Shown here: piece by piece, positions 11,071 through 34,269 of the stretch
Numbering within the stretch: position 1 is the first letter of the stretch
How the letters are laid out: the number at the start of each line of letters is the position of its first letter
DNA from: Thalia democratica
Lineage: Eukaryota
Direction of reading: 5' to 3'
Length of the DNA: 64,000 nt
Assembly: GCA_965202585.1 (NCBI GenBank)
Contig: OZ241832.1
Span: 45,012,001 to 45,076,000, forward strand
The notes under the pieces: generated by a model
Databases searched by the model: none
The model's input: the letters and a program-made list of their open reading frames with translations, nothing else
Told to the model about the DNA's origin: nothing
Program-made: the position numbers and the translations under genes

Positions 11071-11169
11071 CTAGCTAAAGTATTTTTCAAAATCCAAGGT
11101 CTTTAGTTTTTCATATTCTTTGATTGCTTTCAAATTGTTTGGGTCTAGCTCGACAGCTTTTTTCAAGTG
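11071..11169 (-). CDS. TMTC-like terminal exon 18 (TPR helix B)
   Basis: tatttag| acceptor; HLKKAVELDPNNLKAIKEYEKLK...FS*; joins exon 17 (WKENLI) in TPR register. Confidence 0.8.
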   Translation of the reverse strand, partial: HLKKAVELDPNNLKAIKEYEKLKTLDFEKYFS

Positions 11170-14100
11170 CTAAATAAAAAATTATAAACATAAAAACTGC
11201 TCGTAATTTTTAAAAATATACTTAAACAATTTAAAAGTAGCCCCCTAAGAACCTGTTCCCTAATACTGCATGTTATATAAAAATTTCAATTTTTTTTTAA
11301 CATTACTGTTTGTTGAACACTAAAAACTAAAAAAATAATATAATTATGTTTGACTATCAAGCTGTTTTAAACTTAAGTCATTGGGTGTAGTACTTTAATG
11401 CATGTTTATTTTTCTGGTGAATATCATTCTGCTATAAGTTAGAAATTATAAAATTTGTGTACATTAACTAATAAGGTTACTAAACAAAAAATATAAGTTT
11501 AGTTTCTTTAAGATAAGTTTTCAGGCTAAGAACGTGTAACAAAAACCCAATTTAGATTTATAAGTAATACTTGGAAGTTTTTGTAAAATTGTAATATAAA
11601 ATTTATGGAAAACCTGAACGTTGTTGAGGTCAGTATGTACTTTGTCTTATGACTGGTAAAATCATTTTTTTAGATTACTTACTGTTGTCTAAAAGAATTA
11701 AATTTGCGTATCTATAATTGCATAAGTTATTGATAAATTATATTCACATTTAATAACCGAAGGTGAACAACTTATTTTCTTAAATTTTAAAGTTTTAGAT
11801 TTCTTATACAGCGAATAGTTCTAAGATTTTCAAATCTGTACTAATTTTGTGCTGTAATTTTGCTTAAACATTATAAAAATTTTACCTTTCTTCTTATTTT
11901 TCAGTAATTAGAAAAATAATACAACAGTTTAAAACGATTAATGATGTTTTTTAGAAACATTATTATATCAGTTAAATAATAAAAGTCCTCAGGTCGTTTT
12001 ATAAGTTTAGGTAATTTTAAAATCTAAGTTTTAGAAATAGAAATAAACTATGATTTTCTTTACTACAAAATTTAAAGAAGGATGCTAATATGAGAGTTTT
12101 ATTAATTTAACACCATACAACTTTTCAAACAAACGTGTTTTAAAATCAACTTTTTTACTCAAGCGTACTAAGTTTAATTGTTGTTTATACAAAATTTAAC
12201 TTTATTTATCTAAAGTGACTTTTAACATGAATAAAAGTTTTAAAAGAAGATGTGAAAGTGGCACCACAAGTTATTTGGCAAGTGGAGGTGCATATACACG
12301 CAGGTATGATGAAATTATAATCGACATACCAAGAAAGACAAATGCGTTGATGAAACTGTTTTATGGGATGAAAAGTTGGCTGATCATTAGTGGCGTATGA
12401 TTGACTATTCAGAGTTAAAGAGAAAAAATGGAGTTTTACTCAATCCTGAAAAATTCCAGCTTGCACAAAAAGAAATAGACTTTTCTGGATTTACCGTTAC
12501 GATATCTGAAATTAAGCCACAAAAAAAGTTCAAAAGTGAATTAAGGGATTTCCTATACCTAAGTCGCTAACAGATGTGCGATCGAGATTTGGTTTAGTGC
12601 ACTAAGTATCACATTATGACCAGTTGACATCTTTGATGACTGTGTTCAAACCGTTACTAAGTCCCAAAACTAGGTTCTACTGGAACGATGAGCTAGCTGA
12701 TTCTACAAGTCAAAAGAAGCTATAGTTGCAGCCATAATAAAGTAAATACAAATTTTCGATTTGGGAAAGCCCACTTGTATACAGGAAGACTGGTCCACAA
12801 CTGGTACAGCTTATTTTTTGTTGCAAATGCAACGCTCTTGTAGCTCTGTTGTGCCAGTATGTTGTCAAACTTGATGACATTTTGTTTTGGCAGGTTCTCG
12901 CATTCTTAGACCTTCAGAATCACGTTATGCTGCGGTAGAGGGAGAAACCTTGCAATTGTTTGGGCACTTAAGCAATCACGGTATTTTACACAAGGATGTG
13001 ATAATTTGTTGTTTCTGACTGATCACAAACCAATGGTAAAACTATTTGGAGACAGAAAACTTGATGAGCTTGCAAATCACCACCTTTTCTAGTTGAAGCA
13101 GAGATTGGTGGCAATTCTTTATAAACCTGGAAAACTACACATTGAATTAGATTAAATGTCTCGTCATCCGGTGGAAACCATTTATGAAACAAAAGATGGA
13201 GTTGACATAAGTGGTTCTGAAGTTCTAGCTGGGATACGTTTACCAGAAAGTGAGTGTATCATTGCAAGTCATCAAAGAGGTGAAATTTTCAAGATGTGAC
13301 TTTTGGCCAGGCTAAAGAAGAAAGCTCGAAAGATAAAGAAATGATGAAGCTTATTCATTATATTCAAGCTAGTTTTCCACAGATCAAAGACCACCTGCTA
13401 TAGAATAGCATGAGTTTTAGATAATTCGCTATTCTTTATTTATAATGGATGGGGTCATCATGTGTGGTGATCGTAAAAGAGAACTTGATCATAATAGGCT
13501 TCTATCACCTAGCAGTATATTTAGGATGGTGTGAGTAGAATAGTTATTCTTTCATTATTATAAGATTTGTTTTTAGAGTGCTGCATTCTGCTCATAAAGG
13601 GGTCACTGCAATGAACGAGCGAGTAAAAGCGATTGTTTATTAGTCGGGAATAGCAAATGACATTCAAGGTTGTCGGAAAAATGCAATAATTGTAACTTAA
13701 TTGCTTCAAGCAATCCTCGCCTACCTCCAATTGAACCATTGATTCCAAAAGTTCCTTTTAATTAATTGTGTGAGATTATTTTAATTTCAAAGGGTGATAC
13801 TATTTTGTAGCTGCTGACAGACTTTCAGGTTGGACAGAACAACAAAGAATCTAATAAGGTACAAATTATTCTGGTTCAAAATGGCTATGTAAAGCTTTGT
13901 CATTTTAGGTGTTCCAGTTGAAATATCTTCAGATGGAGGTTCAGAGTTTTCTGCAAAAGTTACCAAAGATTTTCTGAAACGATGGGGTTTCAGAAATGGA
14001 TACAGAGATTAGATGACACACGATGGGGCTCATCGTATGTCATCTGCATATCATCCTATGTCAAATAGTAGGGCGGAATTAGCAGTAAAGGCCACTAAGC

Positions 14101-17100
14101 GATTGTTAATGGAAAGCGTTTAACAGAATGCTACAAACTTTACTTACGCTAAGAAATACGCCTGATCCAGTATGCAAACTATCCCCTCTACAGATCCTTT
14201 TGGACTAAATTTAAAGGACTCATAACCTTACATCAGAAAGAGTGTTCGCAGATCTCAAATTTGTGACGTAATGCATGGAGTAAAAACGAAGAAGCTCTTA
14301 GGTCTTATTATGTTAAGTCACTCGAAAATTTAAGTTAGCACACAAAATCGTTGCCACCACTGAATTGCGGTGATCATGTCATGATACAAAACCAAACAGA
14401 TCAATTTCCTAACAAGTGGGGAAAGTAGAGTATTAGTGGAACTAAAAGATTATCATCAATATGTTGTCAAGGTTGATGGACCAGGTTGCTTAACTGTTCG
14501 AAATCGCAATTTAAAAAAAAAATTAATTCTCCCGGTTGCAAATCTCTAAGCAGTATCCCTTATCTGAAAAAAAACATACCACTGCAGATGTTTGTCTTTT
14601 CTGGTTATGATGAGAAAAGAGATTCCAAGTTTAATTTTGATGTTCTGCGCTCCCAGAAGAGAATAACTTTCAAAGCTGGAGATAACTATGGCAAGATTTG
14701 CAACGTTAAACCAGCTACCTTCCTTTCACCTGAAGACTCAAATTGCTTGGGTGCAAGCCAAACCTCTACAAAGCAGAGAAATGGTGTATTGTGTCGCTTG
14801 GATTCTAATAACAAATCTAGGTTATCTAAAAGAAATTTTTTTGACGATGGAGTGTCGCCAAAGAATGAACTGCGTCGTTCCGATCGTTTAAGAACCCGGA
14901 GAAGGATTTACGATACCATAAGTGGTGCCTATAAACCTGTTTAAACTGCAGTTTATATTAATGCTTTTATTCAATTGTAAACTATGTTAATTGTATCATT
15001 TTAGTGTTTTTTTTTTCCTTTTTCGGTTTAATTTCGTTGATTTTTAACACTGAAAACTGTAATAACTTTTATTTTAAATGATTTATTTTGCTAGCTAATG
15101 AATCGTTTCATCTTCTTCATAGATAAAATCTGGGGGAGATGTATAAATATTTATTTAGCTTTCAGTATGTTTTGTTGTACAGATTTTATCACTCTTGTAA
15201 TTAGTTCGTGAATAAACTCAACTAAGAAAGATATTTATTTAATTATCTGCAAAAAAGAACCCATCATACATTTTTAAAGCTCTATTTTTAATGCTTTTAA
15301 TTTTTAATTAGAATAAGTTTTCTATTTTGTACTTTTAGATTACCGTAGTAATAATTTTAATTTTTGTATTTCAATTACCGAAAGTAAATTTTTCAACAAA
15401 AACATTAGCAAACATAAAAAAAAACACTGTGTAAAAACTGTGAATACACTGCGTTGGTCTTTACGAAAATAAACTAACTTATGTAATTAAATACCTTTAA
15501 TCACACATGTATAAATATTTTAAAGTCTCTGTAAGTAAAGTTTGAACTCTAACTTACGATAAGATTTTCCTTCCATGTAATTTGTGACTGTCGTTTTTCG
15601 TTTTTATGATGCAAAAACTGGCTCAAACCTCTTAGTCTACTAGCAATTTCGAGTCGTAAATAAGAAATTTGTGACTTCAAACTTAATTTTTCGTTTTGTG
15701 GTATTAAATTTGACTTTAATCTTCGGTTCAACTTTTTTAAGCACAATTTGTTTGTGTCAATTGCCTAAATATGCTTATATGTCAGTTAAGTAGTAATAAA
15801 AATGTGTATGAAATGTTTTAACGTTCTACTCTTGTAAATATGTTAGATATTGTGGTATTGAAAGTAGCATCATTAAAATTAAACTTTAAATTACTCTTGA
15901 AAGAATGTTAAACAAAACTTATTTTATGAACTAAGTACATGAATTAGAGTAAAAACAACAAGTATACAAAATTACTAATATCTTTATAAAAAAATGTAAA
16001 AAAACATATTTAATCGGTTTTGTATATTTAATTGTATTTCGACAGATTTTATGATAAATTATTTAATCATCTTATTTTGTTAAAATAGATAAGGTAATTT
16101 TGATAATCGAATAATAAATGGTTTTAGGTTATTTTCTTATTAGTATATAAACAAACACAGGTTATTAAAGGTGTGTTATATATTTTAATCAGTTGAAAAC
16201 TGTACTACTATTCATTTATAAACATGTTTTTCGAAAACCTTTACTTCAATATAAACGAAGAAAACTAAGTATGTAGAAAATTTTTTGATATTAACATATT
16301 TCCTAACATACTATAACAAAGTTTATCTATTGATGACTTACAAATGACTTACAAAACAGTTTTAGCCTTAGCGTTTTCGATTTTGCATGTGGTAAAATAA
16401 TTGTTAAAACATTCACAAAAAACACATAATTAAATGAGAATAAAATTTTTAATACAGAACTAAGAAAGGTATCAGATTGGCTTATGGTAAACAAACTCAA
16501 ACTAAACCGTAATAAAACGAGAAGTATGCTTCTACATCAATCAGAAATATTTTTCGAAAACATATAGATCTTAATGTAAAAACAGGTAAAACAGCTAAAA
16601 AAATAAAAAATAGTTATAAATATTCGGGAATAATTATAGACAGAAGTTTAAATGACCAGATCATATAGAAACTATGAAATTAAATGTATAAAACATATTA
16701 AGTAGATTATATAGTACAACACATTTCCTAAATGAAAAAGCAGCTGTTTAATCTTGAATACTCTGTTTATGAGTAATGTTAGATATGGCTCGTTGTGTTG
16801 GGAAGAACAAATAAAAAAATTATAAATTTTATTATGTTCTCATAAACAGAGCACTTAGATGCATACATCATAAGAAATATTACGATAGTTTAAGGAAATT
16901 TAAAACTAATAATAAATATTAAACATTGATTTCTGTATCTGAACGAATTAGATCTTTTTGTGTTTAAAATTTACAACAATTTTTTACCAGATAACTTTAA
17001 TTATTACTTAAAAATTGTACGTATATTCATAGCTATTATACGAGTTCTTCACAAACTACTTTATTCCTACCTAGATTTAACAACAAGAATGGTCACAAAT

Positions 17101-20100
17101 CGCTAGCCTGTCAAGGTAATAAATTATGGCCTACTATTGTGTTTAAAAATTGAAAATTATTTTAGAAAGTTTGTTGATGAACTTAAAAACTATTTATTAA
17201 ATAGTGATAATCAAAGTCATAAGTGATGATTGCAACTCGTTTATTTACTTTTGTTTAACGAGTTAATAATAATTGTCACTTTATACTAAAATATTTTAGT
17301 TTAAAAAGGGATTAGTTTGGTTACAATAACAGTGGCTAAGTATAAATTACAAAATTTCAATCTTATTATTCTTTAGATTACTGTTTTGAATTAACTTCAT
17401 AATTATTACAAACTTCTTTTTTTCTAGCATGTCTATGTAAAATTTAGTTATAGATGTATTTATTTTAAAAGAGAGTTAAGTACATATTTAAATGTTAAGG
17501 TCAGATTACTGTTTCAAAAAAACTTAATCTTCTTTCTTGAGGAAACCTTTTTTTTTCTGCTTGCAAGTATTGTTTAAATTTTAATAGTTACATTTTTAGG
17601 CCTAGAAATATTCAAAACACAAAAAAAAATTTTAAGTAGAAAGAAAATTTGTTGCTATTATCATCAGTATTCTTTTTTTTTCTAATTAAATGCATAGTGT
17701 GTAAATGTTACCATACTTGTTTTTATATTTCTTGTTATAAAAGTTAAGTTAAGTTAATGGTTAAATTCACTTCTTTAAAAGTTATATAACAGTTTTGTTA
17801 TTTATAAAAGTATAAATTTATTTTACTGTTGTATTCAAATTACTAAACGAAATTGTATAGTTAAACTTTTAGCATATAATACAATTAAAATTTAACGTAA
17901 GTATATTTCAGCTTGTTACGCTTTTAACTTCTTTAAAGAAGTTGTAACCTATCTTTTAAGTACTTTTATGTTTGCTATCATTATTTCGTTTCATAGGTTA
18001 AATTAAAGTTATTTTTCAGCTCTTAAAATTTTCTCTACTTCTATTTTTTTAGTTTAAGCTTAGACTGTATTTTCGTTTTTATGTTATTAGACAATTTTTG
18101 GAGTACATTTTAAATAAAACATTTTTAAGTTAACACATTACTTAATTAGTTTTCGTTTAATTTTACTTTCTTTCGTTTTATTATTTGTTTTATTTCCTAA
18201 AGTTTAAAAGTTTGTATTATAATTTCTACTAGCTTGTAAGAAATTGTAAAATAATGCGGTTTACGACTCGATAACCAAAAGGTTCCTTTGCACACCTGGT
18301 CCTTAGACCAAACTTTTTGAGCGCTTTTTTTTTATCTTTAAATATACAATAATTGTCGTTATCAACTTTCGGCTGATAATTTTTTCAATTTGAGAGTAAT
18401 AAAAGTTTAAACAAGTTTTCAAGGCTACTAACAAAATATAGCTTTATTTTTTAGCTTATAATCTTTTTGAAAACAATAATGTTTAAACGAATTTACCTTT
18501 ATTGTTTGTCCATTTCTATCATAATATTTTACAAGTAGTTTCCATATAGTATCTTTATAATAACAACCCCAGTCTAATGGAATCAATTTTTCACGGCTTA
18601 ATTTTTCAATTTCCCGCCACATATTTTTTTGACTTTGAAAAATTTTCAGCTAAAAAAAATTTACTTGAGGTTTTATATATCTTTGTGAATTCTTTTTTTA
18701 TTTAATAAAAATCTATTTTGTACTGACTGTTTATATCGTATATGATAAAAGTCGAAAAACTATGGTGTATGACTTATCTTTTGTTTAGAATAATTTTTGT
18801 AAAACAACCTAAACTATTTGTTCTCTACAAGTATCAAAAATTATACTATATATTATTTGAAATGTAAGTAATAGTGTTAATTTAATGATTATTTTATCAC
18901 AACTTTCATTTAAACAGCTTTTTTTTGCTATAGATTTACAAAAACACTACGGTAAAATTAAATTGTCTTTTAGATGTAGTAATTACAAAAGATTTAATTT
19001 ATGTATGCATGAAAATTTAAACTTTGAGTATCACTTTCTAGACTAATGTTTTTCTGGTATAGTACATTTAACATTTTTTTCTAAATATCAATTTTCTAAA
19101 CAGTTTTTAGTAACTTTGATTAGAAAAACAACTAGAAAGCATATTTTATGTATTTTTTATTTAATTTTTATTTTACTTTCTCAAATACCTTTTCATAACC
19201 TGCTTGTAGAAAATCATCTTTTATGTCTTTAGAAACAAGCTCAAGAATTTCCAGAGCTTCTTTTGAACTATTTAATGATAGTTTACTTGCAAAGTGAATA
19301 GCCTTATTCAAAGCTCGGTGTTGTAATACACACCTAAAACATTAGCATTTGTTTTTCATTACACTTTAAAGTAGACTAATTAAAGAATACCTTTTTACTG
19401 AAACAAAATTAGTTTCCGATTTATTATTGTAAACTTCATCACAGTTTATATAGTTGTTCATTTTATAATAATTCTGCTGAATATCAGAGATTCCTGTAAA
19501 TTGAGTAAGTAAAGCAGTTAGATATTTTAAAGTAAGAAAAAGATAGTATAAAAAATTAATTCAAACTTAATAAAATTGTTATAAAGAGTTTAAGTTAGTT
19601 TTTTTTTAATGAGGTCTTATATTCTTCACAGTATTAGACACTGGTAATAATTTAAAATTTCTTTTTAATATATAAAAGTTGTTTATGTTGTTTAAAAACT
19701 AAATCGCAAAATTTCAAGTCTAATATTTTTACAAAAAAAAACGCACGCAAATCAAATGTTTTTATCTTTTTGGTTTTTAATGAACAATAACCTGTATTAG
19801 AAATCGATGTTTCGCAAACATGTTACTATATTTAAATCATTTAGAATTTCGTTGAAAACTTTAAATTAAAAGTGTTATTATAGTTGTTAACTATAATATT
19901 GTGGTGATTTTTTTTAGAACTATACCTGTTTTTAATGCTTTTGAAATTAAAATAAACTTTAATATTAAAGTTGACCTTCTTTAAGTTTGGTTCATACTTT
20001 AAGCTTTTAAAAGAAGTGAAACTTTAGAAGTATTTTATTAAGAAATAGTATCTTTAAAATTTAAGTATAGTTTTAAATTTAGTATCTCTTTTATACTCTT

Positions 20101-23100
20101 TTTTCAAACCTTCAATATTTTTTGGCATCATGTCCAAAAAGTAGATAAAGTTCTTATCGCATGAAGAAATATTTCCATTGCACAACAAGTTTTTGACTAT
20201 TTTGAATATTTTTAGTTGTAATTCTGAGCTTAAAGAAAGTTTGATTGCTTTTACGAAGCTTAAAACTGTTGAAGCCTCTGTAGCTTTGATTTGAAAACTA
20301 GAAACAGTATTAAGAACATCCTTTTCATCTGCATGACCGGAGAAAACTAGTTTTCTAAAATACCATGGTACAAGTTTAAAACTTTTACGACGTTTGTAGT
20401 AAACCAAAAAACTAGCTGTAGTGTTTTTAATTTTTGCCTGGGACATTTGTAATATGTATACTTTTTAAAATAATAAAAAAAAATTAAAACTATATATTAA
20501 AGTTTAAAACATAAAAAAACTGATAACATAACTATTAAACCAAATCAAAGTGTAGTTATAATGCTCTATTTGGGGTTATAACTAGTGATGTACCGGACCC
20601 GGATCCGGACTTTTTTTCAAATTAGAATGCGGCCGGAACCGGATCCGGACTTGTTTTTTCAAATTAGAATCCGGCCGGAACCGGATCCGGACTTTTTTTT
20701 TCAAATTAGAGTCCGGCCGGAACCGGATATAAGACAAAAATGGCAATATCCGACCGGACCCGGACCCGGATAGTGAGTCCGGTACATCACTAGAATAAAC
20801 TAGCCTGAGTCAGAATGAGGTTTTTAAAAACTGAAAAAAAAAATTTTAATCTAATAATAAGTAGAACAGCTAGCCACAAGGTTTACAAATTTAGGTGTTA
20901 TTTACAAGTAAAAATCTGAATTCAAGTTCTTGAACAAAATACACTAGAAAATTACAAAATATTGAAAACTGGATCAGCTCAAACTCATTCAAAATCTAAA
21001 AGAAAACTAGCCTGAGTTTTTATAAAAAACTAAACTATCCTGAGGCAGTCCAAGGTTTTCTAAAATTCCTAAAAATTTTCAAACTAGCAGGGTTGCCACT
21101 GTTTAAGTCAATAAAGCTAGCTAGAGTGAGTATAAACAAGCCTGAGTCAGAATGAGGTTTTTAAAAACTTAAAAAAATTACTTTAATCTAATAATCAGTA
21201 GAACAGCTAGCAAAGGTTGACAATTTGTTGTGGACTGAGTTGTGGACTGATTGTGGTACACTTAACTTATTAGTACTACCCATCATAATAAAATCCTACC
21301 TTATTTAATTAATATCTAACAAATACTAAATTCTAACTGAGACTACTTTCTATAATCAGACACGACAGTTTTGAGTGATGAATCTTTTATATAAAACACA
21401 ACAAGAAATACTAGCATATACAAAATTATTAATTACTTTGGTAATACTTTAAAAACTGGAAGCTATTTAAATCTATATCAAAAGACTTAAAACAAAAGAC
21501 TAAAAATTAAATAAAACTTTTAGTAAACAAGAAACTGTAAAATTTTTAATAAACTATTAAACTATAAACCTGGCTTAAATATTTAAACAATTACACACCT
21601 GTTGAAATATTCACTTTTAAAACAAAACACTACTTACAATAAGCATTCACAAAAACGTTCAAGATATTTTGTTGCTTCAAGCTATACACAAAACTAACTA
21701 ACTGCTTACATATAAACTGCCTGTCATGTTCTGATGTTTTATTACATCAGTATTTAGTTTGAAAAATTTCGTCATATGATTCTCCTTGGCTCGTACATTC
21801 AACCGTATAAACTCTAAATATTCTCTGAGCTCAACTTTAAACAATAAATAATGCAAGTATTCATTCCTAAGTTTTAAATTTTACAACATATGTAAAGAGT
21901 TGCATTTCATGAAATGTTTAATTCATAGTTTAAATGTAAACAAATGTAAATTAGTCACGTGTACAAAATGAGCCAATCACGGTAGGTGTTTAATTTTAAC
22001 TGACGAAAATGACTCTTATTAATTTACACAGGGTTTGTTTATGAAAAAGTACTTTTCAGTATGCTCTTTTTTACTAACTAGATCCCAATCGGCCGGATCC
22101 GGACTTTTTTTTTCAAATTAGAATCCGGCCGGAACCGGACCCGGACTTTTTTTTTAAATTAGAATCCGGCCGGAACCGGATCCGGACTTTTTTTTCAAAT
22201 TAGAATCCAGCCGGATGCGGATATCAGACAAAAATGGCAATATCCGGCCGGACCCGGACCCGGATAGCGAGTCCGGTACATCACTAGTTATAACCAACTT
22301 TATTTTTATATTCTAAAGTAAATGTTCTTTATATTACTATTTCAACGTAGACGGGTTATAAATGCACAAAGGTTCATTTTTGCAAAAAGGGACACTGAAG
22401 GCACAAAGACGCTTTTGCAAGAAGGGTCATTTTTGCATGAGGGACAACGATAACTTTGTACGAGAGTAAAAAATATATATATATATCAAAAAAATTAAAA
22501 TAAATAAATACCATTTGCAACTAAAAAGTAAGATAGTTTTATTCATTGTTAATTCGAAGCTTTTCGTCTTACTTCCATAAAACTTTATCAAGAATGAAAG
22601 ATGAGTTAGTAGTTAATTTTACAATAAGTTTGTAACTTGTAATATTATGACGTAAACTATAGACATTTTAGAATCGAAAAGTTAATAACTGTAGATAGTA
22701 AATGGGCAAAATTTTAAACAAAGTTATAACAGAATCACTTAAAACATTTAAATCAATATATACTTAAAACTATTCGTTTTCCATTCAAAGTTATTTGCGT
22801 ATTTTAAACAGGGTTTTCTTCCTCAATGACCATTGAATCTAAACCATAAAGGTTACTTATTTTACATCACTTTAAAACTTTAAAATTGTCATAGATATTT
22901 GTGTAACGGCAGGACTGGCAGTTGTAGATATGTTGAAATATTGCGCTGTTTTTGTCGGATCCTTTGTGATCTTCGATTCGTCGGAAAATTTGTCTGGATG
23001 TCTCTCCAACGTAGAAGATGTTCTGATCTTCAGAGCAAGTATATTTATAAATGACATTCGCATCGAAAACTTCCGAGCATTTGCTTTTGTTGTTTAAATA

Positions 23101-26100
23101 GTTGGATATTTTCTGCTGGTGTGTACGGGTTTGATTTCTATGTTGTACTTTTGAAAAACCGATTTTATACGCTTTTGGAACTTCAATGAGGGATTACCTA
23201 CTTAAACTGTTATGAAAAAAAGAGTTTTAGTTTTCTTGATTTGACTTGTTTATGCTTTGGTTATTTGATTTATTTTTACGTAATGTTGTCAACTTTGTAT
23301 TCTTCTAAAAACTTATCGATTTTAATTTCTATCAACTGTTTAGGATATTGATTCTTTAAAAGTAAATTTTTGATTCTAAAGAGTTTTTCTTTAAATGTCA
23401 AAAAATTAGAACTAATGTTTAGTGCTCTGTTTAAATAAAAAAATATTAACCTTAGTTTCCAAGCTTTTGGACAAGTAACTGTGTATTGCATAAATAAATT
23501 ATTGTCTGTTGGATTTCTATATACAATGGTTTGTAGTTGATTTTAAATCTCTTTTATTCTTGTGTCACGAAAAAATAGTTTATTTTCGTTGGGTCTTTCT
23601 AGGGTGAACTGCAGATTAGGGCGTATTGTATTCATTTTATTGTAAAAGGTATCTAAATAATGGTTGTTTTCCATAAGGACAAGTATGTCATCTACGTATC
23701 ATGTGTAGAAAATAGGTTATGTTTTAATACTGTCTTTTAATTGGGTGTTTTCTTTGATTGTTATAAACCAATTTGCTAAAAGATTTAGTAAGCACTTTTA
23801 CTATCTACAGTTATTAACATTTTAAATCTAAAATATTGTTTACGTCATAATATTTTAAGTTAAAAACTTATTGCAAAATTAATTACTAACTCGTTTTTCA
23901 CTCTTGATAAAGTTTTATGGAAGTAAGACGAAAAGCTTCGAATTAACAAGGAATAAAGCTATGTTACTCTTTAGTTGCAAATTATATTTATTTACGACGA
24001 AAATCCATCCAAGAATTATTAAAATAATAATAAAAAGTTACCGCTCAATGGTAAGGTCTAGGGGTAACATTGGTAGTATTAAACGATAGAAACAAAATAT
24101 ATATATATATATATAAAGTAAACCGACCAAGGGTTAGGGGTAATAGTAATATCAAGAAAAAAAACGATAATAATAAGAAAAAAAAAATACTAAGTAAGAG
24201 TAAGGGCTAGGGGTAACAGTGATATAGTAAGGAAATAAAAAGTATTATAAGTACTGATAAAAATTAAATAAAAAAAAGTTTCAACCCCTGCAAAACAATC
24301 TTCGTGCAAAAAAATTCCTCATGCATATTTGACACTTACCCATTCCTAATAGTATAAAGTAGACTTAAGAAGTGTTAAAATAATATAAAGTAGTATTATG
24401 AGTTAGTTTGGTCTACAATATAGATACATATAGTTAGCTTTAAAAAGGTCTTTTCACCTAGAAACCTTTAAGTAGTTACTATTTAGCTTAGGCTTGTAAA
24501 CAAAATAAATGTTTTTTTAAAGCAGTTGTTAACAGGCTTTAAAAAGTAAAGGGTCGGATACGGATTTACAAGAAAACGTACTTTGCAAGCCGCCATAACT
24601 TTGAAAACCTATAAATCAGGGCTTCCAAACTCATTTTCCTTTCGCCCACTTAACAGAAAATAAAATATATCCCTTTTAATCAGATATCGCTGAATTAAAA
24701 TAAATATTTGTTGGGTAATCAAATGCTTATTTATAATTGAATAAAGAGCACATTTGTAAATTTTCGTACAAAAAACTTGAATTTTGAAAAAATTTTTTTA
24801 AATAAGTCGCAGGCCAGATAAAATAGAAATAAATAATTTTAATATACTCATAAGTATATTGTATCAGTTTTTCATAGTTTATGTACACGTTTTGTTTAGC
24901 TCCTAATATGTCTGCTAAAATACAATATTTTTAATACAATTCGAATTTTGGTCAAGCTTATTTTAGTATAGCTAATAAGTGATGTTTATTCTTAAAATTG
25001 AAAAAAAAAAACAATTTCAATAGCGGAAAAATGTTATAGAAAATAACCTTTTATTTTAGACGGTAGTGAAAATAATGTGATTTGTCTACGTTTTTATTTG
25101 CGTATTTAAATTTTCGTAAACGGATATATGTTATTGTAAAGATGAAAAAAAAATTTGTACATAAAAAAAGATAAACTTTCTTTGCTTTTAAAGTAAAATA
25201 GACAACGTTTTGAAAGCACTGGCATTCGGCAGTTATGTGGTGAGCTTAACATTTTGAAATAATTCAGAACGTTTCTTTAAGAGATGTAGTCCGTTTGTTC
25301 TTAAGTTTTAAGTATGTCCTTATTAGCTTGTTAAACTGTATATTTGTGCTCATTTTTATTGTTATAAGTTTTGTAATAGTTATGTAGTGATCATTTTTTC
25401 CGTGTTGTTTAGTTTGTAAATTAAATAAGTCTTACAATTTGTATATTAATTTAATCTTCTATATCCAACACCCACATATATCCCCATTTATCTAACTCGT
25501 ATGTACTAATATACGTTACATTAGCATACCAGAAAAACGTAAAACCTCATTGAAATCAATCCTTTTTAATATCAGCTTACAGCTGCAACACTTAACAACA
25601 GTAAAAATACCATAAGGTATATTAATGCTTTGTTATTTAGTACGCTGTAGTTTTAAATTCATAGCAAGTTATAAGAAAACAAAGTAAATATGTAATTGAA
25701 TTTTTTTACATGAAACTATTACTTACGATTGGTATTCTGCCAGTTTATAACGAGGCAAGTTTTCTTTTGGAATTAATTCGATAGACTTTTTGTAATAGTT
25801 TTTGACTTTGATCTAAAAAAAAAACTAATAATGAGTTGTTCAAAATTCATTTCAAACACGTAATGTTTTATTACAATTTCTTGGTCGGTCTTTAAAAAGT
25901 TTTCATATGTTGATGCCAAAGATAAAAGAAACTTTCCTTTTACTTCACTTTCTGACTTTTGCACTGAACTTTTAAAATAGGTAATTGATTTATGTTCTTC
26001 TTTTAAATTGTTTAGAAATAATTTTCCTTTTTCATATTGGAGGTGGCTATCATTTGAAAAATCACGATTGATCGTACAGCTAAAAAGTTTAAGTCGTAAA

Positions 26101-29100
26101 GTTAATTTTATTAAATCTTAATTTAGTAAATTTGAGTAAAGTTGATTTAAAACCAGAAAATATGATAACTTCATTGAGCACAACCATTATTCATAATGTT
26201 CAAAACAATCATTACTTAGTTTTATGTACATTTCATACACATAAAATTTTCTATTTTTTAAAATTAAACAAAAATGTTAAGACCTTTATGCTTTCCTTAT
26301 AATTTATTTTTTGCTAAACAGTTTTTGATGGTAAGCGCAAGTCTGTTGTATTTTTGAGTTAATTTAAATATAATAATAGTAACTTTTTGTTAGGAATTTG
26401 TTTTGTGAATTACATGCTTCTTATAAAACGCTGTTTTTATAGTATGTTACAGCACTAAACTTATAATTAAATTAACTCGCTTATTTTATTTAAAAACTTT
26501 AAAAATGTTAGGCTAAAGTTATTTTCTAAGTTCTATATACAAGTATTAATTCACAGTATTCCAAACTATCCTTTTAAAACTTACTAAGAGCTCAAAGAGT
26601 AAAGTAAAACCCGAGCTGCTAAATAACATTATACTTTAAAATTTTCCTTTATTGCTTGTATGCTTCTCTTAAAACGATATTTTTGTAGTATGTTACAGCA
26701 CTAAGTTTAAAAATAATTGAACTTGCTTATTTAATTTTAAAATTAAACAAACTGTTAGGCTAAAGTTATATTCTAAGTTCTAACATAGAAGTTTTAATTT
26801 GCAATATGCTAGATTATCCTTTTAAAATTTACTAAGAGCTCAATGAGTAAAGTTAAAAGCTAAATAGTAAATTTCATTAAACTTAAAAGTTTACTTGTAT
26901 AAGACACTTAAATTTTAAACTAAAAATTTTATGTTAGTCAACTTTAAATTTTTATTTCAACTGAAAGAAATAAAGAAAGAATTGTTTTATTATTTTTATC
27001 TTATACTTTTATTTGCACTAAAACAACATTTTAAGACTACATTCAAAGTGTAAATACTTGATAAATTTAGGAAGTTTTAAGATGTAAAATTTATATCTAT
27101 CAAATTTTATCCTTTGAAGTATTGTACTTAAGTTTTAAAAGCTACTTTAATTTAAATGTTAAAAGTTTTTTATTGAAATTATGTTTTCTTACTTAATTGC
27201 AGATTCTCTTGATACCCATTCTAAAGACCTTATATTTGATAAACGTAGCTGTTGTAGTATCAAAATTATCAAAATGAATTTTGAAAAAACACTTGTTATC
27301 TCTGTAAATTAAATTAAAAGCTAATTATTAATGATATATGAGCTGCAAAATATTATTTTAAATTAAGTTTTAAGAATAAAAGTAATAATAATAACTATAC
27401 TGTTAATGATTAAATTATAATATTAATAACAACTTGATAATTCCTTAAAAAACTATTTTTTGTAAACAAAAACTTTTAAGTATTTTAAATCAATCCATGT
27501 CAATTCCTATCAAAAATTTATAAAAAAAATAACTTAACTTTTCATAAAAAATCTTGTACAATATTGAATGGGGAATTTTGTAATCTAAGAAATAAGTTGA
27601 TATACAAAGAAAAAAGTAATAAAAAAATAACTTTCAAACGTTGTCAGTAGACGAGCGAGAACTATACTAAAGCCAAGACAAGACACATACAGTCCTACTA
27701 CTGATGCTGAAGATGTTATTTTAATGGATAAAATCAAAGGAGCAAATAAAAGAATCAATCCATATGTTATTACTTTCTATAAAAATAATTTAAAGATAAG
27801 GTACTTTTCTTTGAATATTTATACAAAAAACTTACTGAGTTTTTTCCTGAAGCACTAAGAAGCAATACTAATGCGACCACCATAATATTGATCAAAGATA
27901 CACTTTCATTTAGTTCTTCAAAAGTCAATTGTAGATAAGGAAAGTTTTTGTGGACTAGCATTGTCTTAATAACTGATAATGTTTGCTTTAAGGTTTTAAA
28001 CAAAGGATTAAAACAAAAGTTTACAGTAGAATAGCTTGTATAACTATAAGCAAACCAGGACACAAAGCTGAAAGCAATAGGAACCTGTTAAATTCATGTA
28101 AATAAAAAAGAATTCCATAAAAATTATTACAATTTAATTTAGTAAAGTTATCAGTTACTTTAACTTAAGTTTAAAGTACTTTAGATTTTTGTGTAATTGA
28201 TGACTTGTTTAAATAACTTTAACAACTTTGATTTAAGATATAAAAAAGAGTTTAAGTAGGATTTTTTTCGGCTATTAAATAGATATTAAAATATATTTTT
28301 ACAGTAAGATCTGTTTTTAGTCCTAAAGGTAAAGACCATATGTCTAACAAACATAAAAATTGCGTGGTTTAAACGTTTGAATGCTGTTGCACAAACAGTT
28401 ATATTGTTCAAAACTCTAGGCATCTTGAAGCCGGAATTAAAGAGCACATTCCAAAGTGTGTTAGAGTACGTATTTAAAATCAGTCAAAGAAAATTAGTAT
28501 AGCAACTTCAAATGCAATAAATAGGTCTTCAATAGAACATTTAGTTCAAAATCTAGTTTGTGGAAGAAGTTATGATGAAACAAAATTTAAAATATTAAGA
28601 ACTTGTAACATTATTTTCAACCTGGTCAAAACTAAAGGCATATTCATTCATTTAAAACAAAGTTATGTAAGCAGAAAGAATTTGATTATTCATTATCCTT
28701 GTTTAGTTAACTAGTGATCTCATGTTGTATTTAGTTATGTTTTTTTAGAATTTTCATTACTTTTCTATTTTGTATTTTTTGCTTGATTAATTTATTTCTG
28801 ATGTAACTATAAAGCTATGTAAGTTTAAAGTCTTCTTTACTTTGTTGCAAATGTATCACACTGATAGAAATTTCTTGAAATATGCTTGTGTTGAATAAAA
28901 GACCTTGTTTGTTTTTAATCAAGTACAATAGCAAAATAATTTTAAAAATCTTCTAAAAATATGCATATAAAATTTTTATGTTGTGTTATTTAAGCTAATG
29001 TTACACTGGTAGATGCTATATAAATAACGCTAAGAAAAATTATTTATACTGTTTTACATGTGTTTCCAGTTTAATATCTGATCATAAAACTTATATGTAC

Positions 29101-32100
29101 GTAAAATATTATTTAAGCATATACATATATGCTTAGAAACAGAAATAGGATGTTAAATACGAAAAATCTTGACAAGAAAACTCCCTTAAAAAAGCTAAAG
29201 CAATCGTTTTTGCACGCAAATGCTTTATTCAACTTAGGACATTTAGCTGCTATAAAACATTAACAGCTTAAAATATTTGTAAATATTGTAACCTATATAT
29301 ATAGACAGAAGGTTTTATATGTAGGTTACGTTATGATAACGTGTTTCTATTATTTTTTCATTGTTAATTCGTAACAAAAACCTTTTTTAATTTTACTACA
29401 CATTATATTATTTTCTGTAACGTTCAGAGATAATTTGTTAAAAATGTTTTATTTTTAGTTAGTTTTGTATAACTAACTAAGAACTAAACCAACATTATTG
29501 TTTACTGTTAAAATCTATTTAGATAGAAATTTAATTCGTCTTTATTATTTTATGAATTTATTTTCATTATTGTAGATTTTCATTCTTGATTTGTTTTAGT
29601 ATGATTTTTAAATTTATGTTTATTAATTTTGTAATTACAGTAAACATTAATGTTATTTTTGCTTGTAGTTGAATATAAATTCGAGTTTTTCACTCAATTG
29701 TTACATAATTCTATTTATTTTTAATGTTTTTAATAACACAATTTTGTTTCAGTTTATTCTTACTAGGTATTGTATTGATAGTCTTAGTGGAAAAATATTA
29801 GAGTTAATATATTTTTCAATCTTTTTGTTTATGTTTTTAATGTATAACTATCAGTTTTGAGTCTTTGATTTAAATAGTTTAATAAAATTGGTAATCATTT
29901 ATATCTTAAATAAATGTATACTAGAACACTAGGTTGCTTTTTTAAAGTAACTTCTTAGTTAATAATTTTTAGTTTAATATTTATACTATGCGCGCCAAAT
30001 CTTCGCCCCAAACAGATCTATTAGTTTATAAAATACTTGTAAAAAACAACTAAATTTAAGCATTTTTGTAATAAACATTTACAAATATACTTTTAATTTA
30101 ATTATTTTTAAATGGAAAGTGCTATTTTAAAGATCATTTAAATACAATATTGTTGTTGATTAGATTTTTTTTGTTTTTACATTCAAATTTTCAAAAATAC
30201 ATAGACTTGCAAAAAAAATTTCAAACAGAACTAGTCGGCAAAAGTTTCTTTATAAAAAAATTACTTCTGGAAAGTTGCCGATTTTAGCTTTAGAAATTTT
30301 TGTTTTCAATTATTGCATTCTCTTTTTAATTATAAAAGTATGTATTTATAGATAGATAAACTTAGTATATACATCAGATTTTACTTAGTTTTATTTTATT
30401 TTTTATGATATATGTTATAATTTTTAAAGACTCCATAGAGCTTTTTATAACATATTGGCATGGAAAATGTAAAGTTGAATTATATATTTTCATAAAAAAA
30501 AAATTGTTATTTTTTAAACTTTAAGCCATTTATAGTTATTCAAAGAACTGTATTTAAACTTATATATTCTTGAACAAATACGAACTACTGTGTATTTATT
30601 TTTCTTAACTAAATATAACTTTTTTTTTTAATCTTATAAATGTAGAAAAAAAAACTGTAGTATCAAACAGAAAAAATGTATTATTAAGAAAGTACAATTA
30701 TTAGTATTTTACCAAAAAATCTTTCATTACTAACCTTTACGATAATATCAAGACTTTTCAAGTCGAAAATTTTTGAAACTGAATAGATACAGATGGCAGT
30801 CACAATAAAGATCAATGCTGAAAGTTGAAGACAAAAGGTTTTAATTTTTAAACAAAAAACAGTTATACCGCTTTAAAACTAACAGTAAAAATTATTTCGT
30901 TTTTATGACAATTTAAATCACGACATTTCAAATTCTTATAGCTCATAATTTTCAAGTAGCCATATTTCGAAAAAAAGTTTTAAGATAAAAAAAAGTGAAT
31001 TTAAAAGTCCAACTAATAAAAACTATAGAAGTATCATTTTTTTCTTATAAATAATAATACACAATCACTCGAGTTATTAGAGTTTGAAATGGTGGAATTT
31101 GTCTTATCAGAAATTTGAATGTGGTGCACCTAACTTTTTGCGCATTGCGTTCTACTTTGGTGAGAGTTTTTCATAACATGGATGTACTTTTTGCAGTAAG
31201 TTTTTCTTTTATTTTAACTTTAAATATTACGTTAAAATGAAACAGTTTGATTTACTTATTTATTAACTTTAAAAATTTTAAAAACTTAGGTTTTAATAGA
31301 CTAAGTATTTTTTTTTTTAAAAGGGTTTACTGGTGCATGTACTACTCCTTCAATTTTAACCGACTTTATTTACAAACTTAGCGAACATTAGCTGTTTTGT
31401 TCTTTATTTCTTCAATACTTGTGTCTAACTTGTAATTGATTTTTAACTGTTAACCAACATTTAATATTTACTAGCAATAACTTCAAGTTTATTAAAAATA
31501 GTTAATTATAACTTTTTTACTTCTTGTTACAAGCTTGTGAATAGTTTTGTTCAATTTTAAAATTTTACAAATATTTAGTCCTGGACAAGACGTTAAATTT
31601 TATCCGTGTTAATAACCGAAAGGTTCTTCGTGCACCAGGTCCCAGGACCAAAAATTTTGAGCGTTTTTTTTTTTTTTGTAGTTCAAATAAACTATATATA
31701 GTGTTTACTAACACTGCGTTTTACGTGTTTTTTTCAGATTTATAACACTGATAAGCCTATTTAGCAAGAAAATTGCTTGTAAAATACTTTTAAAAATTAC
31801 CTTAACAAATAAAAATTATTTTATGTTTAATATTATTTTTATGAATACTTACTTTTGTTTGTATTATAATGACAAAATTCTTAAAATAGTTATAGACGCT
31901 TACTTTATTTTTATTTTTTAATTATTCTAAGAGCAGCAATTTAAAATAATTTATAGTCAGCAAATAAGGTCAGTTCATCCCATTATAAAGTTTTCCGCAA
32001 AAAATATCAAAAAGTCTAACGTTTCAAAACTAACAAGCTTATATTAAAGTAGGCCTGGTTTACTTACCGCTACACTAAATGAAATGCATATTTATATATA

Positions 32101-34269
32101 AATTAAAATATAGTAGACAAAAGAAATTTTATAGATTGAACTAGAAAAATATAAACTAAATTATCTAACCTATTTTAGTTTGAGTAACCGTTAAAAATTT
32201 GTTCACAGGAAATTAGTTAAACGAATATAAAAATTATTAACATAAAATGTGTACTTATAATTTTATACAAACTAACAATTGGTTTGATGCAGCTGTAAAA
32301 GTACAAATATTAGAGGAATCAAGTAGACGGTTTTGCAATTCGGTTTAGTCATTTCACACAGTAAAGTCTTAAAAGTTAAGCAACCTATCAGAAGTGAAGT
32401 CCCTGTAATGTCGCACACCTGCTCATATTAAGTACTTATTAATTATTTCAAAAGGTTTTTAATCAGAAGTATTATATATTCTAGAACCATTTAAGTTTCT
32501 TCATACTGTTATCTTTTTTCTCTTTTTATATAGTACTGTTGTATTATACACGTCTTACTTTTATACATCAACAGTGTAGTGCAAAACAAAGAAACCTTTT
32601 TTTTTATCTTACAACCAAAATTTTAAAAACATTTCTATCAACAATGGTAAAACGTGATTACATTACTTATATAGAAAAATAAATCAACTTATTTTTATTA
32701 TACTATGTAATAATTATGCTCCATAATTTTTACAGCTAAAATGACACACTCTGAAAGGGACCCTGTTTCAAAAAAAACTTTAATAGTTGCTAGTTTTTTT
32801 TTTCAGTTATTAAACTTGTTATATTATATCAAGTTTAATAACTGAAAAAAAAAACTAGCAACTATTAAAGTTTTTTTTGAAATCAATTAATCAGGTTCTT
32901 TATAACGAAAATTGCTATTATAGCTAGAAAAATAAGAAAAAAAACCACTATTTAAAATTAGACAGTTGTAGAAAACTTATTTTTGACTGTTATTATGCCT
33001 TTAAATATTGATAAATAATTAACACTCGTTTTCAGCAAAAATAAATAACTAACAATTCTACGAGTAAACAAAAAAACTTATTTAACAAGTATGCAATTAT
33101 CTATATAATTTGTTTTTTTTTGTCACAGAGTTACTCGTTTTTTAAACAAAATGATTATTTATAAAAACGTAAAATAGTTTTTCGAAAAAAAATGAAAATG
33201 TTTCCGAAGTACCCGTAATACCTAGGCATAAATTATTTAAAGCAATATAAAAAACACTTATTTCAAAGTATCAATTTTATTATAAATTTAAAATTAATAA
33301 ATGAAAATAATATGTTCATTATTTTAAGTTTAAAATAAATCTTAGTTTGATCGAATTACAGCTTATAAAAACTTATTTTTATTTTTACATGTTGAAAAGT
33401 TTATTAGCTTTAGTTTATTTTTTTAGTTATATTCTAATCCTAGAGCTTGTTTTTTTCAACTAAAGTTAGGGGTTATTAAAAAACAAAAAACTTACTAGCT
33501 CACAGTGAACTGGGTGACTACTAAAAATCATTGAAGCATATAAAGAAAATGTAGAAGATAGCTTGAGTGAAAAGCAAAAATAGTAAAAGCTGATACAGCA
33601 CATTGTACGAACTAGTGCATTTGTCAAGATATAATACAAGTGTTTGTATTCAATCATATCCTGTAGTAGCCTGTAATTTTAAGTAAAGATTAAAAAAAAA
33701 TCGTTTTATAATAATTAGTTAAGAGTAAAAGTCAAAAAATAAAACAAACCAACGAATTCGAACCATTACAGTGTTACAAGTTTAAGGTTACTATTTTGTA
33801 GTTGTAACTCTTGTTAGCATTAATGTTTATCAAAAAAAAAGAAAATATGCAAATATTTTGAAAAAATATAAACAAAATTATTCAATACAAATTCTAATAA
33901 AAACTACTTGAAAAGTTTCACAGTAAATACTGAGTGGTCTTTTAACTCATTGTAAACAGGAATTCCACGTACAACAACATAATCTCCACTAAACCTGTAT
34001 TCATTCTGTAGAAACCACAAAACTTAAATCTAATATTTAGTCAAACTTTTGAATATTGTTTTTTTAGATTTTTTGAAGTATACAGAATGTTCTAATATAC
34101 TTTTAGTAAGATGCTAGTTTTTTTTTAACAGAAAAAAATGATTAATTCTCACCTGAAAAGCTCTATCTACAATTTTAGCACCAAATATCTTATAAAGTAA
34201 AGATAAATGAGCTACAAAAGACAAACAAACAATTAAATAAAAGTGAACATATGAAGTTTTTTTATTCAT
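11071..34269 (-). CDS. Divergent TMTC-like transmembrane + TPR protein, 18 coding exons, ~864 aa (hand-built model)
   Basis: GT-AG exons with consistent phases: 34269-34153, 34005-33908, 33670-33496, 32418-32277, 30817-30735, 28423-28349, 28084-27836, 27776-27632, 27301-27193, 26079-25875, 25812-25727, 25582-25530, 20460-20110, 19493-19391, 19333-19189, 18649-18497, 15764-15558, 11169-11071. Total 2595 nt, ATG to TAG, no internal stop. Hydrophobic segments in exons 1-9 with TMTC-like motifs in family order (YILTNALVR, FSSHPVHCELV, FNP, RSLEW). TPR-like helices afterwards (YYKKSIELIPKEN, HLKKAVELDPNN). Confidence 0.8.
12260..15251 (+). mobile_element. 5'-truncated decayed Ty3/Gypsy element 2 (RT end, RNase H, integrase, PPT, short LTR), in the last intron of the TMTC-like gene
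   Basis: YTRRYDEII..KCVDE (RT); DWSTTG and SRYAAVEGE (RH); LHSAH..G and PVEISSDGGSEF..YHPMSNSRAELAVK (INT); PPT GGGGGAGA 15132-15139; TGT...CA segment 15140-15251 with AATAAA. Confidence 0.88.
15558..15764 (-). CDS. TMTC-like exon 17
   Basis: tttag| acceptor, |GTAAGT donor; phase 0->0; overlaps ORF 15549..15746. Confidence 0.8.
16150..17250 (+). mobile_element. CR1/L2-type LINE RT C-terminal remnant
   Basis: ELRKVSDWLMVNKLKLNRNKT (~16455), YKYSGIIIDRSLN (~16615), VRYGSLCW (~16780); frameshifted. Confidence 0.75.
18264..18330 (+). repeat. Dispersed ~70-bp repeat (also 31612-31670 + and 61826-61895 -)
   Basis: ATAACCGAAAGGTTCTTYGTGCACCAGGTCYYAGGACCAAA..TTTTGAGCG in three copies. Confidence 0.75.
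18497..18649 (-). CDS. TMTC-like exon 16
   Basis: ttttag| acceptor, aag|GTAAAT donor; phase 0->0; overlaps ORF 18428..18622. Confidence 0.8.
19189..19333 (-). CDS. TMTC-like exon 15
   Basis: follows a 57-bp intron; |GTATTT donor; phase 2->0. Confidence 0.8.
19391..19493 (-). CDS. TMTC-like exon 14
   Basis: ttacag| acceptor, |GTATTC donor; phase 1->2. Confidence 0.8.
20110..20460 (-). CDS. TMTC-like exon 13 (alternative acceptors at 20437 and 20415)
   Basis: T-rich tract then aaaag| at 20460 (phase 1); donor g|GTTTGA; coincides with ORF 20054..20446. Confidence 0.75.
20583..22286. mobile_element. Non-autonomous hAT element with CCGGATCCGG subterminal arrays and a transposase C-terminal remnant
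   Basis: TIR TAGTGATGTACCGGA...TCCGGTACATCACTA; perfect 8-bp TSD GTTATAAC (20575-20582, 22287-22294); internal minus-strand ELREYL...FFKLN...VLCIA*SN..ERF resembles a hAT dimerisation domain. Confidence 0.85.
22501..23995 (-). mobile_element. 5'-truncated Penelope-like element with inverted pseudo-LTRs
   Basis: RT YVDDILV (~23695), thumb RLIFFYLNRALNISS, GIY-YIG VIYKYTC...YVGETSR (~22990-23060); 22501-22720 is inverted at 23775-23995. Confidence 0.88.
23899..23944 (+). ncRNA. Hammerhead ribozyme, U3-A8 variant (inverted copy at 22551-22596)
   Basis: UUGAUAA-A-[GUUUU/AAGAC]-GAAA-AGCU-UC; palindromic short stem III; lies in a PLE pseudo-LTR. Confidence 0.55.
25530..25582 (-). CDS. TMTC-like exon 12
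   Basis: ttgcag| acceptor, |GTATGC donor; phase 2->1. Confidence 0.65.
25727..25812 (-). CDS. TMTC-like exon 11 (TPR-like)
   Basis: follows a 62-bp intron; |GTAAGT donor; phase 0->2; NYYKKSIELIPKENLPRYKLAEY. Confidence 0.8.
25875..26079 (-). CDS. TMTC-like exon 10
   Basis: tttag| acceptor, |GTAATA donor; phase 2->0; overlaps ORF 25773..25964. Confidence 0.8.
27193..27301 (-). CDS. TMTC-like exon 9
   Basis: ttacag| acceptor, |GTAAGA donor; phase 1->2; last TM then RSLEWVSRES. Confidence 0.8.
27632..27776 (-). CDS. TMTC-like exon 8
   Basis: follows a 59-bp intron; phase 0->1; YGLILLFAPLIL...LYVSCLGFSIVLARLL. Confidence 0.8.
27836..28084 (-). CDS. TMTC-like exon 7
   Basis: taacag| acceptor, |GTAAGT donor; phase 0->0; matches ORF 27770..28063; two hydrophobic stretches. 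Confidence 0.8.
28349..28423 (-). CDS. TMTC-like exon 6 (boundaries least certain)
   Basis: ttcaag| acceptor, |GTTAGA donor; phase 0->0; MPRVLNNITVCATAFKRLNHAIFMF. Confidence 0.55.
30735..30817 (-). CDS. TMTC-like exon 5
   Basis: pyrimidine-rich tttcag| acceptor, aag|GTTAGT donor; phase 1->0; LIFIVTAICIY. Confidence 0.7.
32277..32418 (-). CDS. TMTC-like exon 4
   Basis: gcag| acceptor, |GTTAGT donor; phase 0->1; VCDITGTSLLIGCLTF...YLIPLIFVLL. Confidence 0.75.
32766..32882. repeat. Perfect inverted repeat, 53-bp arms and 11-nt loop
   Basis: 32766-32818 is the exact reverse complement of 32830-32882, including the homopolymer lengths. Confidence 0.92.
33496..33670 (-). CDS. TMTC-like exon 3
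   Basis: ttacag| acceptor, |GTAAGT donor; phase 2->0; ends FSSHPVHCEL, resembling TMTC FAxHPxHTEAV. Confidence 0.85.
33908..34005 (-). CDS. TMTC-like exon 2
   Basis: ctacag| acceptor, |GTAGTT donor; phase 0->2; NEYRFSG...DHSVFTVKLF. Confidence 0.8.
34153..34269 (-). CDS. TMTC-like exon 1 (MNKKTSYVHFYLIVCLSFVAHLSLLYKIFGAKIVDRAFQ)
   Basis: ATG at 34269; donor cag|GTGAGA; phase 0; first TM segment. Confidence 0.75.

Follow-up and report, generated by a model that had tools for sequence, protein, structure and literature searches.

A transcribed and highly divergent TMTC-derived gene of Thalia democratica in which most catalytic-loop motifs are replaced

Introduction

The TMTC proteins form a recently recognised family, and TMTC1-4 are protein O-mannosyltransferases of cadherins. 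Their catalytic motifs are spread over the luminal loops: loop 1 carries a diacidic DD pair and SHKSYRP, loop 2 RxD, loop 3 KE(T/Q)xxT, loop 4 DW, and loop 5 ERxxY. Jointly, these motifs bind the metal as well as the donor's phosphate and mannose (PMC7801869). Here we describe a TMTC-like gene on the minus strand of a 64,000-nucleotide (nt) stretch of the Thalia democratica genome (assembly GCA_965202585.1, contig OZ241832.1, positions 45,012,001 to 45,076,000). This whole stretch is called the window below, and positions are counted from its first letter. The window has a GC content of 27% and comes from an 802-Mb animal genome.

Two further pieces of background are needed to place the gene. 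The TMTCs share their fold, the loop-1 Asp, and an Arg before transmembrane helix (TM) 10 with PMT/POMT, ArnT, and STT3/PglB (PMC7801869). The loop-1 diacidic pair matters for the function of TMTC3, and the association of TMTC1, 2, and 4 with SERCA2B gives a precedent for a noncatalytic TMTC function (PMC7001481).

The window protein resembles TMTC1-4 in its collinear N-terminal domain with 11 putative helices, in the motifs HPxHxExV, NP, LYxxxxGF, and RxxxW, in three exactly shared intron positions and a fourth approximate one, and in a C-terminal part with some TPR-like helices. It differs from them in that DD has become D-R and NDFWG, SHKSYRP, RxD, KE(T/Q)xxT, DW, PASNL, and ER are replaced or deleted. 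Moreover, loops 1 and 4 are shorter, DUF1736 is undetectable, identity does not exceed 21%, and the branch in the family tree is about 15 times the median. With PMT/POMT, ArnT, and STT3/PglB, compared here via their published description, the gene would be expected to share the fold by descent, whereas their Arg and second acidic residue are lacking.

Descent from the TMTC family

No single exon reaches a Pfam threshold. Homology was recovered only by way of the spliced exons and a comparison of intron positions. An intron-less homologue of 757 amino acids (aa) from a metagenome contig served as a seed to fetch 120 TMTC members from animals, green algae, and amoebozoans, and a profile was built from the 83 members with complete N-termini. 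The spliced protein of 469 aa matches this profile with 35.5 bits in two collinear domains. By comparison, 900 shuffles of the same protein gave at most 5.7 bits, and those among them confined to 10- or 20-residue windows, which preserve the hydrophobic profile, at most 3.7 bits. Exon 3 alone is the sole profile match among the 2788 open reading frame (ORF) fragments of the window (E 3.7e-7, 26 bits).

Other methods lead to the same family. With hhalign, residues 2-466 align to profile positions 12-625 over 453 collinear columns (86.7% probability, E 4.4e-6), and an independent MAFFT L-INS-i alignment returns the same residue map. BLASTP against the 120-protein set finds named TMTC2 and TMTC3 proteins at E 4e-8 to 5e-6; one alignment spans 446 residues at 18% identity, and 21% is the maximum. 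The initial annotation had called the gene TMTC-like, and the profile with its decoys, hhalign, BLASTP, MAFFT, and the shared introns discussed below all bear this out.

General databases, on the other hand, yield little. An exon-by-exon Pfam scan found no family match. The TMTC_DUF1736 model PF08409 (cut-off 27 bits) does not match exon 6 at E 1, and in a genome-wide scan at E 10 it misses the locus while finding three other loci with 60-96 bits. A check against TMTC/DUF1736 profiles thus succeeds with the family profile and fails with the Pfam one. An exhaustive phmmer search with exon 6 against 1.84 billion representative proteins returned only a spurious repeat protein, and metagenome contigs gave no match to this exon. 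Sequence searches of the PDB with exon 3 and the canonical DUF1736 exon, a search of bacterial genome contigs with the canonical DUF1736 exon, and protein atlas searches with exons 6 and 3 produced no match or, in the atlas, no usable one. The expectation that automated annotation would miss or fragment the gene fits the finding that exon 6 is without a relative among those 1.84 billion proteins, but this does not prove that the gene is unannotated.

The same genome encodes canonical TMTC genes at three loci, namely C1 (68.885-68.889 Mb), C2 (22.035-22.050 Mb), and C9 (15.638-15.651 Mb). We took 60 kb around each, located the exons by profile, and then read the splice sites. All three retain every family motif, and their exons each match the family profile (E 1e-7 to 1e-26), in contrast to the window gene, where only exon 3 does so. 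C2 is a TMTC3 orthologue (support 100/99), and C1 and C9 could not be assigned to a subfamily. In C9 the KEQG motif is preceded by a large insert of low complexity.

Three introns of the window gene lie at exactly the same position and in the same phase as introns of these genes. Intron 2 (phase 2) interrupts the F(R/K) codon after ...LF, as it does in C1 and C9 (...SF|R), intron 3 (phase 0) falls between HPVHCEL and V, as in C1 and C2 (HPxHVEA|V), and intron 8 (phase 2) sits in the eighth codon past the tryptophan of RNxDW, as in C1 and C9. The match of intron 1, in phase 0 shortly past the DD position, to a phase-0 intron of C1 is approximate, with shortened flanks. The intron phases of C1 at equivalent points read 0, 2, 0, and then 2, like those of the window gene. 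As shared intron positions and phases are independent of amino-acid composition, they argue for TMTC descent. Taken together, alignments and introns show that the gene descends from a TMTC, and its structure comes closest to that of C1.

A spliced and transcribed gene

The gene starts with an ATG at 34269 and consists of multiple exons. RNA and DNA contigs of other samples were aligned over 28301-34300. Two metatranscriptome runs of one marine sample contain about 5-8% of the sampled words from 27100-34300, roughly what is expected of runs that hold mainly exons. A 2545-nt RNA contig (X1 record 2), present in both runs and with five exact junctions, is about 98% identical to the window and matches it in five blocks (34295-34153, 34005-33908, 33670-33496, 32418-32277, and 30817-30735) before entering the exon that begins at 28084. 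Three of these junctions recur in a second RNA contig (X2), whose loose end at 30732 continues into the 28084 exon. Once alignment ambiguities of one to three bases are settled, the exon borders are canonical AG/GT, with GTGAGA as the donor of exon 1. The introns are present in DNA contigs from two other samples, which shows that the joints reflect splicing and not deletion. The hidden spliced gene proposed in the initial annotation is thus real, with RNA junctions that join exons 1 to 5 and enter exon 6.

The RNA differs from the window by about 2% overall (among exon positions at 34184, 34242, 34245, 34248, 33603, 33595, 33589, and 32350) and thus stems from a source other than the sequenced individual, either another population or a near relative. 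Searches of the genome itself with exons 6 and 3 found no paralogue of the gene. It is therefore a single-copy gene that is transcribed and correctly spliced.

Exons 1 to 6 are in frame from the ATG at 34269 without a stop; exon 1 ends in phase 0 and exon 2 in phase 2, within the codon for K72. Exons 7 to 10 were placed by splice sites and phase and are also collinear with the TMTC profiles. From exon 6 a GTAAGT donor leads over a 59-nt intron to 27776-27632, followed by 27301-27193 with a phase-2 end; 26079-25875 and 25812-25727 join in phase with good splice sites. Combined, the ten exons form an open frame of 469 aa. An exon finder trained on exons 1-10 and on paralogue exons returned the same chain at penalties of at least 14, a result that is partly circular. 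Of the 18 exons and 864 aa originally proposed, these ten exons stand, while the exon models between 25726 and 11170 are unstable. The estimate of about ten hydrophobic segments agrees with the hydropathy plot, which gives eight strong and three weaker segments, collinear with TM1-11 and with loops 1 and 4 shortened. A GITGTSE-like stretch near 33222, considered as a duplicated beginning of exon 4, was rejected, as its DNA alignment is no better than that of shuffles and its frame does not fit.

Replaced and retained motifs

The motif map is based on hhalign and MAFFT, as hmmalign aligned no more than residues 67-148. All motif strings quoted in the initial annotation are present in the translation: AKIVDR (31-36), KDHSVF (61-66), HPVHCELV (124-131), HQTN (174-177), FNP (230-232), APLIL (300-304), GLY (316-318), and RSLEW (361-365). 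All of these strings fall within open stretches of the minus strand between 34296 and 27192. Its central contention, that the catalytic-loop motifs are replaced, holds at positions that are invariant in 76-83 of the 83 animal, algal, and amoebozoan family members.

Beginning with loop 1, the DD pair (M1) corresponds to D35-R36 in exon 1, in a segment that hhalign aligns with low confidence and that MAFFT deletes or leaves unaligned. DD occurs in 83/83 family rows, which were selected for having it. D35 probably stands at the first position of the pair. In exon 2, NDFWG has become GDYVV and SHKSYRP has become ELKDHSV (M2), both anchored on the well-aligned TVKLFK; the residues replaced are invariant in 81-83 of 83 rows. 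The HPxHTEAV motif, on the other hand, is kept as HPVHCELV across exons 3 and 4. Further along exon 4, GRAD/E (RxD/E, M3) reads GTSL, with T137 and L139, in a high-confidence block, and hhalign and MAFFT agree that KE(T/Q) (M4) is replaced by T176-N177-S178. The K and E of this motif are present in 79/79 family rows, and residues 160-190 of the window protein contain neither Lys nor Glu.

In exon 6, DNP is changed to FNP, the NP surviving, and DW (M5) is aligned by both programs with E261-E262, in a loop 4 that has neither Trp nor Asp. PASNL is deleted from exon 7, where AERxLY (ERxxY, M7) reads SVVGLY (V314-V315-G-L-Y318), anchored on the conserved LY..GF; the Arg of ERxxY is found in 80/81 family rows. 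RNxDW in exon 8 is present as RSLEW and keeps its RxxxW. Loops 1 and 4 are each about 12 to 25 residues shorter than in the family. The blocks around M3, the LY..GF anchor of M7, and RNxDW have hhalign confidence 7-9. These motifs, the DD loop included, are not restored by any alternative exon, as DD, NDFWG, SHKSYRP, KEQG, DNP, and AER are absent from all other ORF fragments of the window.

Divergence and constraint

In a maximum-likelihood tree the end branch of the gene measures 10 substitutions per site, which is the ceiling of the program and about 15 times the median of 0.64; those of C1, C2, and C9 are 1.4-1.65. As the branch is saturated, the tree does not resolve the placement of the gene. 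Nevertheless, at the base composition of the introns the chance of 469 open codons in this 27% GC genome is about 8e-19, and every splice site is intact. That open frame and splice sites persist after such change points to long-term selection on the protein. In comparison with a sister DNA sample, none of the 32 differences listed, a part of the whole, lies in an exon, where 3.3 were expected (P ~0.03); exons make up about 10% of the compared stretch.

The 3' half and its surroundings

Past exon 10 the RNA contig extends 1108 nt further, and ab initio exon chaining over 25726-11170 picks transposon ORFs or shifts with the penalty. One 3' exon model has a length of 1108 nt, equal to the remainder of the contig; we did not count this agreement, since a wrong model would be no less likely than a right one to show it. 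It is possible that the transcript ends just past exon 10; read without splicing beyond 25727, the frame meets a stop after one more codon, which would give a truncated protein of 470 aa. Searches of the 3' half with TMTC proteins and paralogue ORFs (tblastn and blastp) found only repeats and weak TPR matches.

TMTC proteins carry a C-terminal array of 8-11 TPRs. The TPR-like helices of the initial annotation may be recognised in part, through the weak alignment of exons 9 and 10 and sub-threshold matches of the probable last exon, while no exon reaches a Pfam TPR threshold. The last exon matches positions 23-34, in the C-terminal half, of five Pfam TPR models at E 0.01-0.14, which is below threshold, with TPR_8, TPR_11, and TPR_2 at E 0.012-0.025. 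Table 1 lists the features of the gene.

Table 1. Features of the TMTC-derived gene, in window positions
Feature	Position	Strand	Content and evidence
5' untranslated transcript start	34270..34295	-	2545-nt RNA contig begins 2 nt before 34295
Exon 1, coding	34153..34269	-	ATG, TM1, start of luminal loop 1, D35-R36 for DD; RNA and translation
Exon 2	33908..34005	-	Shortened luminal loop 1, GDYVV for NDFWG, ELKDHSV for SHKSYRP; RNA-confirmed junctions
Exon 3	33496..33670	-	TM2-TM3 and HPVHCEL, best conserved part; RNA-confirmed
Exon 4	32277..32418	-	V131, TM4-TM5, T137..L139 for RxD, T176-N177-S178 for KE(T/Q); RNA-confirmed
Exon 5	30735..30817	-	TM6; RNA-confirmed on both sides
Exon 6	27836..28084	-	TM7, shortened loop 4 (DUF1736 equivalent) with NP retained and E261-E262 for DW, TM8; start RNA-confirmed, GTAAGT donor
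Exon 7	27632..27776	-	TM9-TM10, PASNL lost, V314-V315..Y318 for ERxxY, LYxxxxGF retained; splice sites and phase, exon finder, profile domain 2, hhalign confidence 7-9
Exon 8	27193..27301	-	TM11, RSLEW in place of RNxDW; phase-2 end eight residues beyond W
Exon 9	25875..26079	-	First degenerate TPR-like helices; phase-compatible sites, weak collinear alignment to first TMTC TPRs
Exon 10	25727..25812	-	YYKKSIELIP, TPR-like end; GTAAGT donor, five weak tblastn matches to TMTC TPR regions
3' part between exon 10 and last exon	11170..25726	-	Holds transposon insertions; exon models unstable
Candidate cassette exon, 115 nt	21710-21824	-	AG acceptor, GTAAGC donor; in phase 2, out phase 0
Probable last exon	11071..11169	-	HLKKAVELDPNN... 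then TAG stop; strong phase-0 acceptor, terminal exon of the exon finder

The introns of the gene contain several repeats. An element of about 60 bp in intron 4 (31612-31671) reaches a word depth of 160,000-210,000 in the DNA runs, compared with about 100-300 in most neighbouring bins. Many RNA contigs contain it as well, and copies related to it occur at 18200-18384 and within introns of the canonical TMTC loci. It resembles a short interspersed element or a miniature inverted-repeat transposable element of very high copy number, and ARAGORN detected no tRNA in it. A repeat whose translation in one frame contains ...SGSGSGRILPFLS...RPDSNLKKK... has copies at 20585-20809, 22157-22312, and 35386-35541, two of them within introns of the gene. 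At 28250-28550, an intronic stretch shares 70-85% translated identity with a stretch near the C9 locus and is a dispersed repeat, not an exon.

Two larger elements also lie within introns. ORFs on the plus strand at 12200-14950 belong to a retroelement with integrase-like and polymerase-like parts, inserted in a large intron; its higher GC content misled the exon finders there. On the gene's own minus strand, the ORFs at 22870-23700 carry a YVDD reverse-transcriptase motif and GIY-YIG-like nuclease motifs and look like a Penelope-type element.

Interpretation

How is such a gene to be understood? Its ancestor was a TMTC protein O-mannosyltransferase, a type of enzyme with a GT-C fold, 11 membrane helices, and a luminal TPR tail. 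The scaffold appears to have been kept, as seen in the helix order and in the motifs HPxHxExV (after TM3), NP (loop 4), LYxxxxGF (TM10), and RxxxW (after TM11), whereas the residues for binding the metal, dolichyl phosphate, and mannose, present in all other family members, are replaced or deleted. Because these binding residues are replaced or deleted, the product likely no longer moves mannose from dolichyl-phosphate-mannose. What was preserved would then be a noncatalytic role in the membrane of the endoplasmic reticulum (ER), for example the binding of clients or partners through the leftover luminal loops and the TPR-like tail, or the modulation of a TMTC paralogue that is still active or of a partner in the ER, such as the calcium pump bound by TMTC1, 2, and 4. 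We thus regard a retained, noncatalytic, TMTC-derived ER membrane protein as the probable nature of the product, albeit with clear reservations, and we infer the ER location, the loss of activity, and the noncatalytic role from the protein sequence. The wording "catalytically dead" in the initial annotation is to be taken in the same sense.

Critically speaking, several observations weigh against this interpretation. hhalign confidence is only 0-3 at the DD loop (M1), loop 3 (M4), and loop 4 (M5), although the loops concerned hold no Lys-Glu pair, no Trp, and no Arg despite this low confidence. A metal could still bind at D35 and E261/E262, and the loops retain a number of Lys and His residues. 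The TPR tail may be degenerate or truncated. Of the eight RNA-versus-genome differences listed above, six are nonsynonymous, which equals the neutral expectation (fraction of synonymous sites 0.215); the amino-acid changes are mostly conservative V/I, M/L, and F/V swaps in membrane helices. Finally, no orthologue was found for a comparison of nonsynonymous and synonymous substitution rates.

Some of these observations would also suit a gene in decay, that is, a former TMTC paralogue that drifts while still being transcribed and spliced and whose protein has no useful function. The extreme tree branch, the six nonsynonymous differences, the missing relatives of exon 6 and missing paralogue in the genome, and a 3' half riddled with transposons with unrecognisable TPR exons can all be read in this way. 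Neutral sequence at 27% GC would, however, not hold 469 codons open, and decay does not sit easily with ten retained splice-site pairs, the retained order and hydrophobicity of 11 helices, and the retained HPVHCELV and RSLEW, nor with exons that appear depleted of differences to the sister sample; we therefore consider it unlikely. That the protein is instead an unrelated multi-pass membrane protein, resembling TMTCs through its hydrophobic composition, would explain why no exon has a Pfam match, why PF08409 misses the locus even at E 10, and why single exons go unrecognised by the protein atlas and the PDB sequence search. Yet shuffles that preserve local composition fall far below the observed score, and three exact matches of intron position and phase to true TMTC genes are independent of composition, making this explanation highly implausible.

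It could also be that the protein is still an active glycosyltransferase with a rewired site built on D35 and E261-E262, perhaps using another lipid-linked donor or acceptor. In its favour, D35 can be aligned with the first Asp of loop 1, which is kept in all GT-C enzymes (PMC7801869), the exchange of DW for EE leaves an acidic side chain, and the scaffold persists. Nevertheless, neither the phosphate-binding Arg of ERxxY nor the Lys of KE(T/Q) is left, and no basic residue lies near either place; SHKSYRP, NDFWG, and RxD have been lost as well, loops 1 and 4 are shortened, and the lost positions are essentially invariant from algae to mammals, so that we deem a rewired enzyme rather improbable, more likely only than an unrelated protein. 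The probable reading thus remains that of a retained, noncatalytic membrane protein.

Implications

Among the rhomboid proteases, the iRhoms are pseudoenzymes that were retained from an active family. They serve as a working analogy for the window gene, since here too the scaffold persists without the catalytic residues and expression continues; they differ in that a regulatory or partner role of the window gene is drawn by analogy. Along these lines we tentatively suggest, at somewhat less than even confidence, that the gene encodes a GT-C-fold pseudoenzyme, i.e., a TMTC paralogue that has lost its chemistry and is selected as a noncatalytic ER membrane adaptor. If true, such an adaptor could act by holding clients or by regulating an active TMTC paralogue or a partner in the ER, and it would be the first pseudoenzyme described in the TMTC/PMT clan; a literature search turned up no description of a pseudoenzyme among TMTC or GT-C proteins.

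The gene is also a case in point for annotation, as its homology is visible only from spliced exons and intron positions. An expressed copy with the scaffold in place and nearly all catalytic residues swapped is a natural separation-of-function variant, which could reveal roles of the TMTCs beyond mannose transfer, such as the binding of partners and clients and the association with the calcium pump. Should the product indeed be a pseudoenzyme, the GT-C fold would join the enzyme families that spawn pseudoenzymes.

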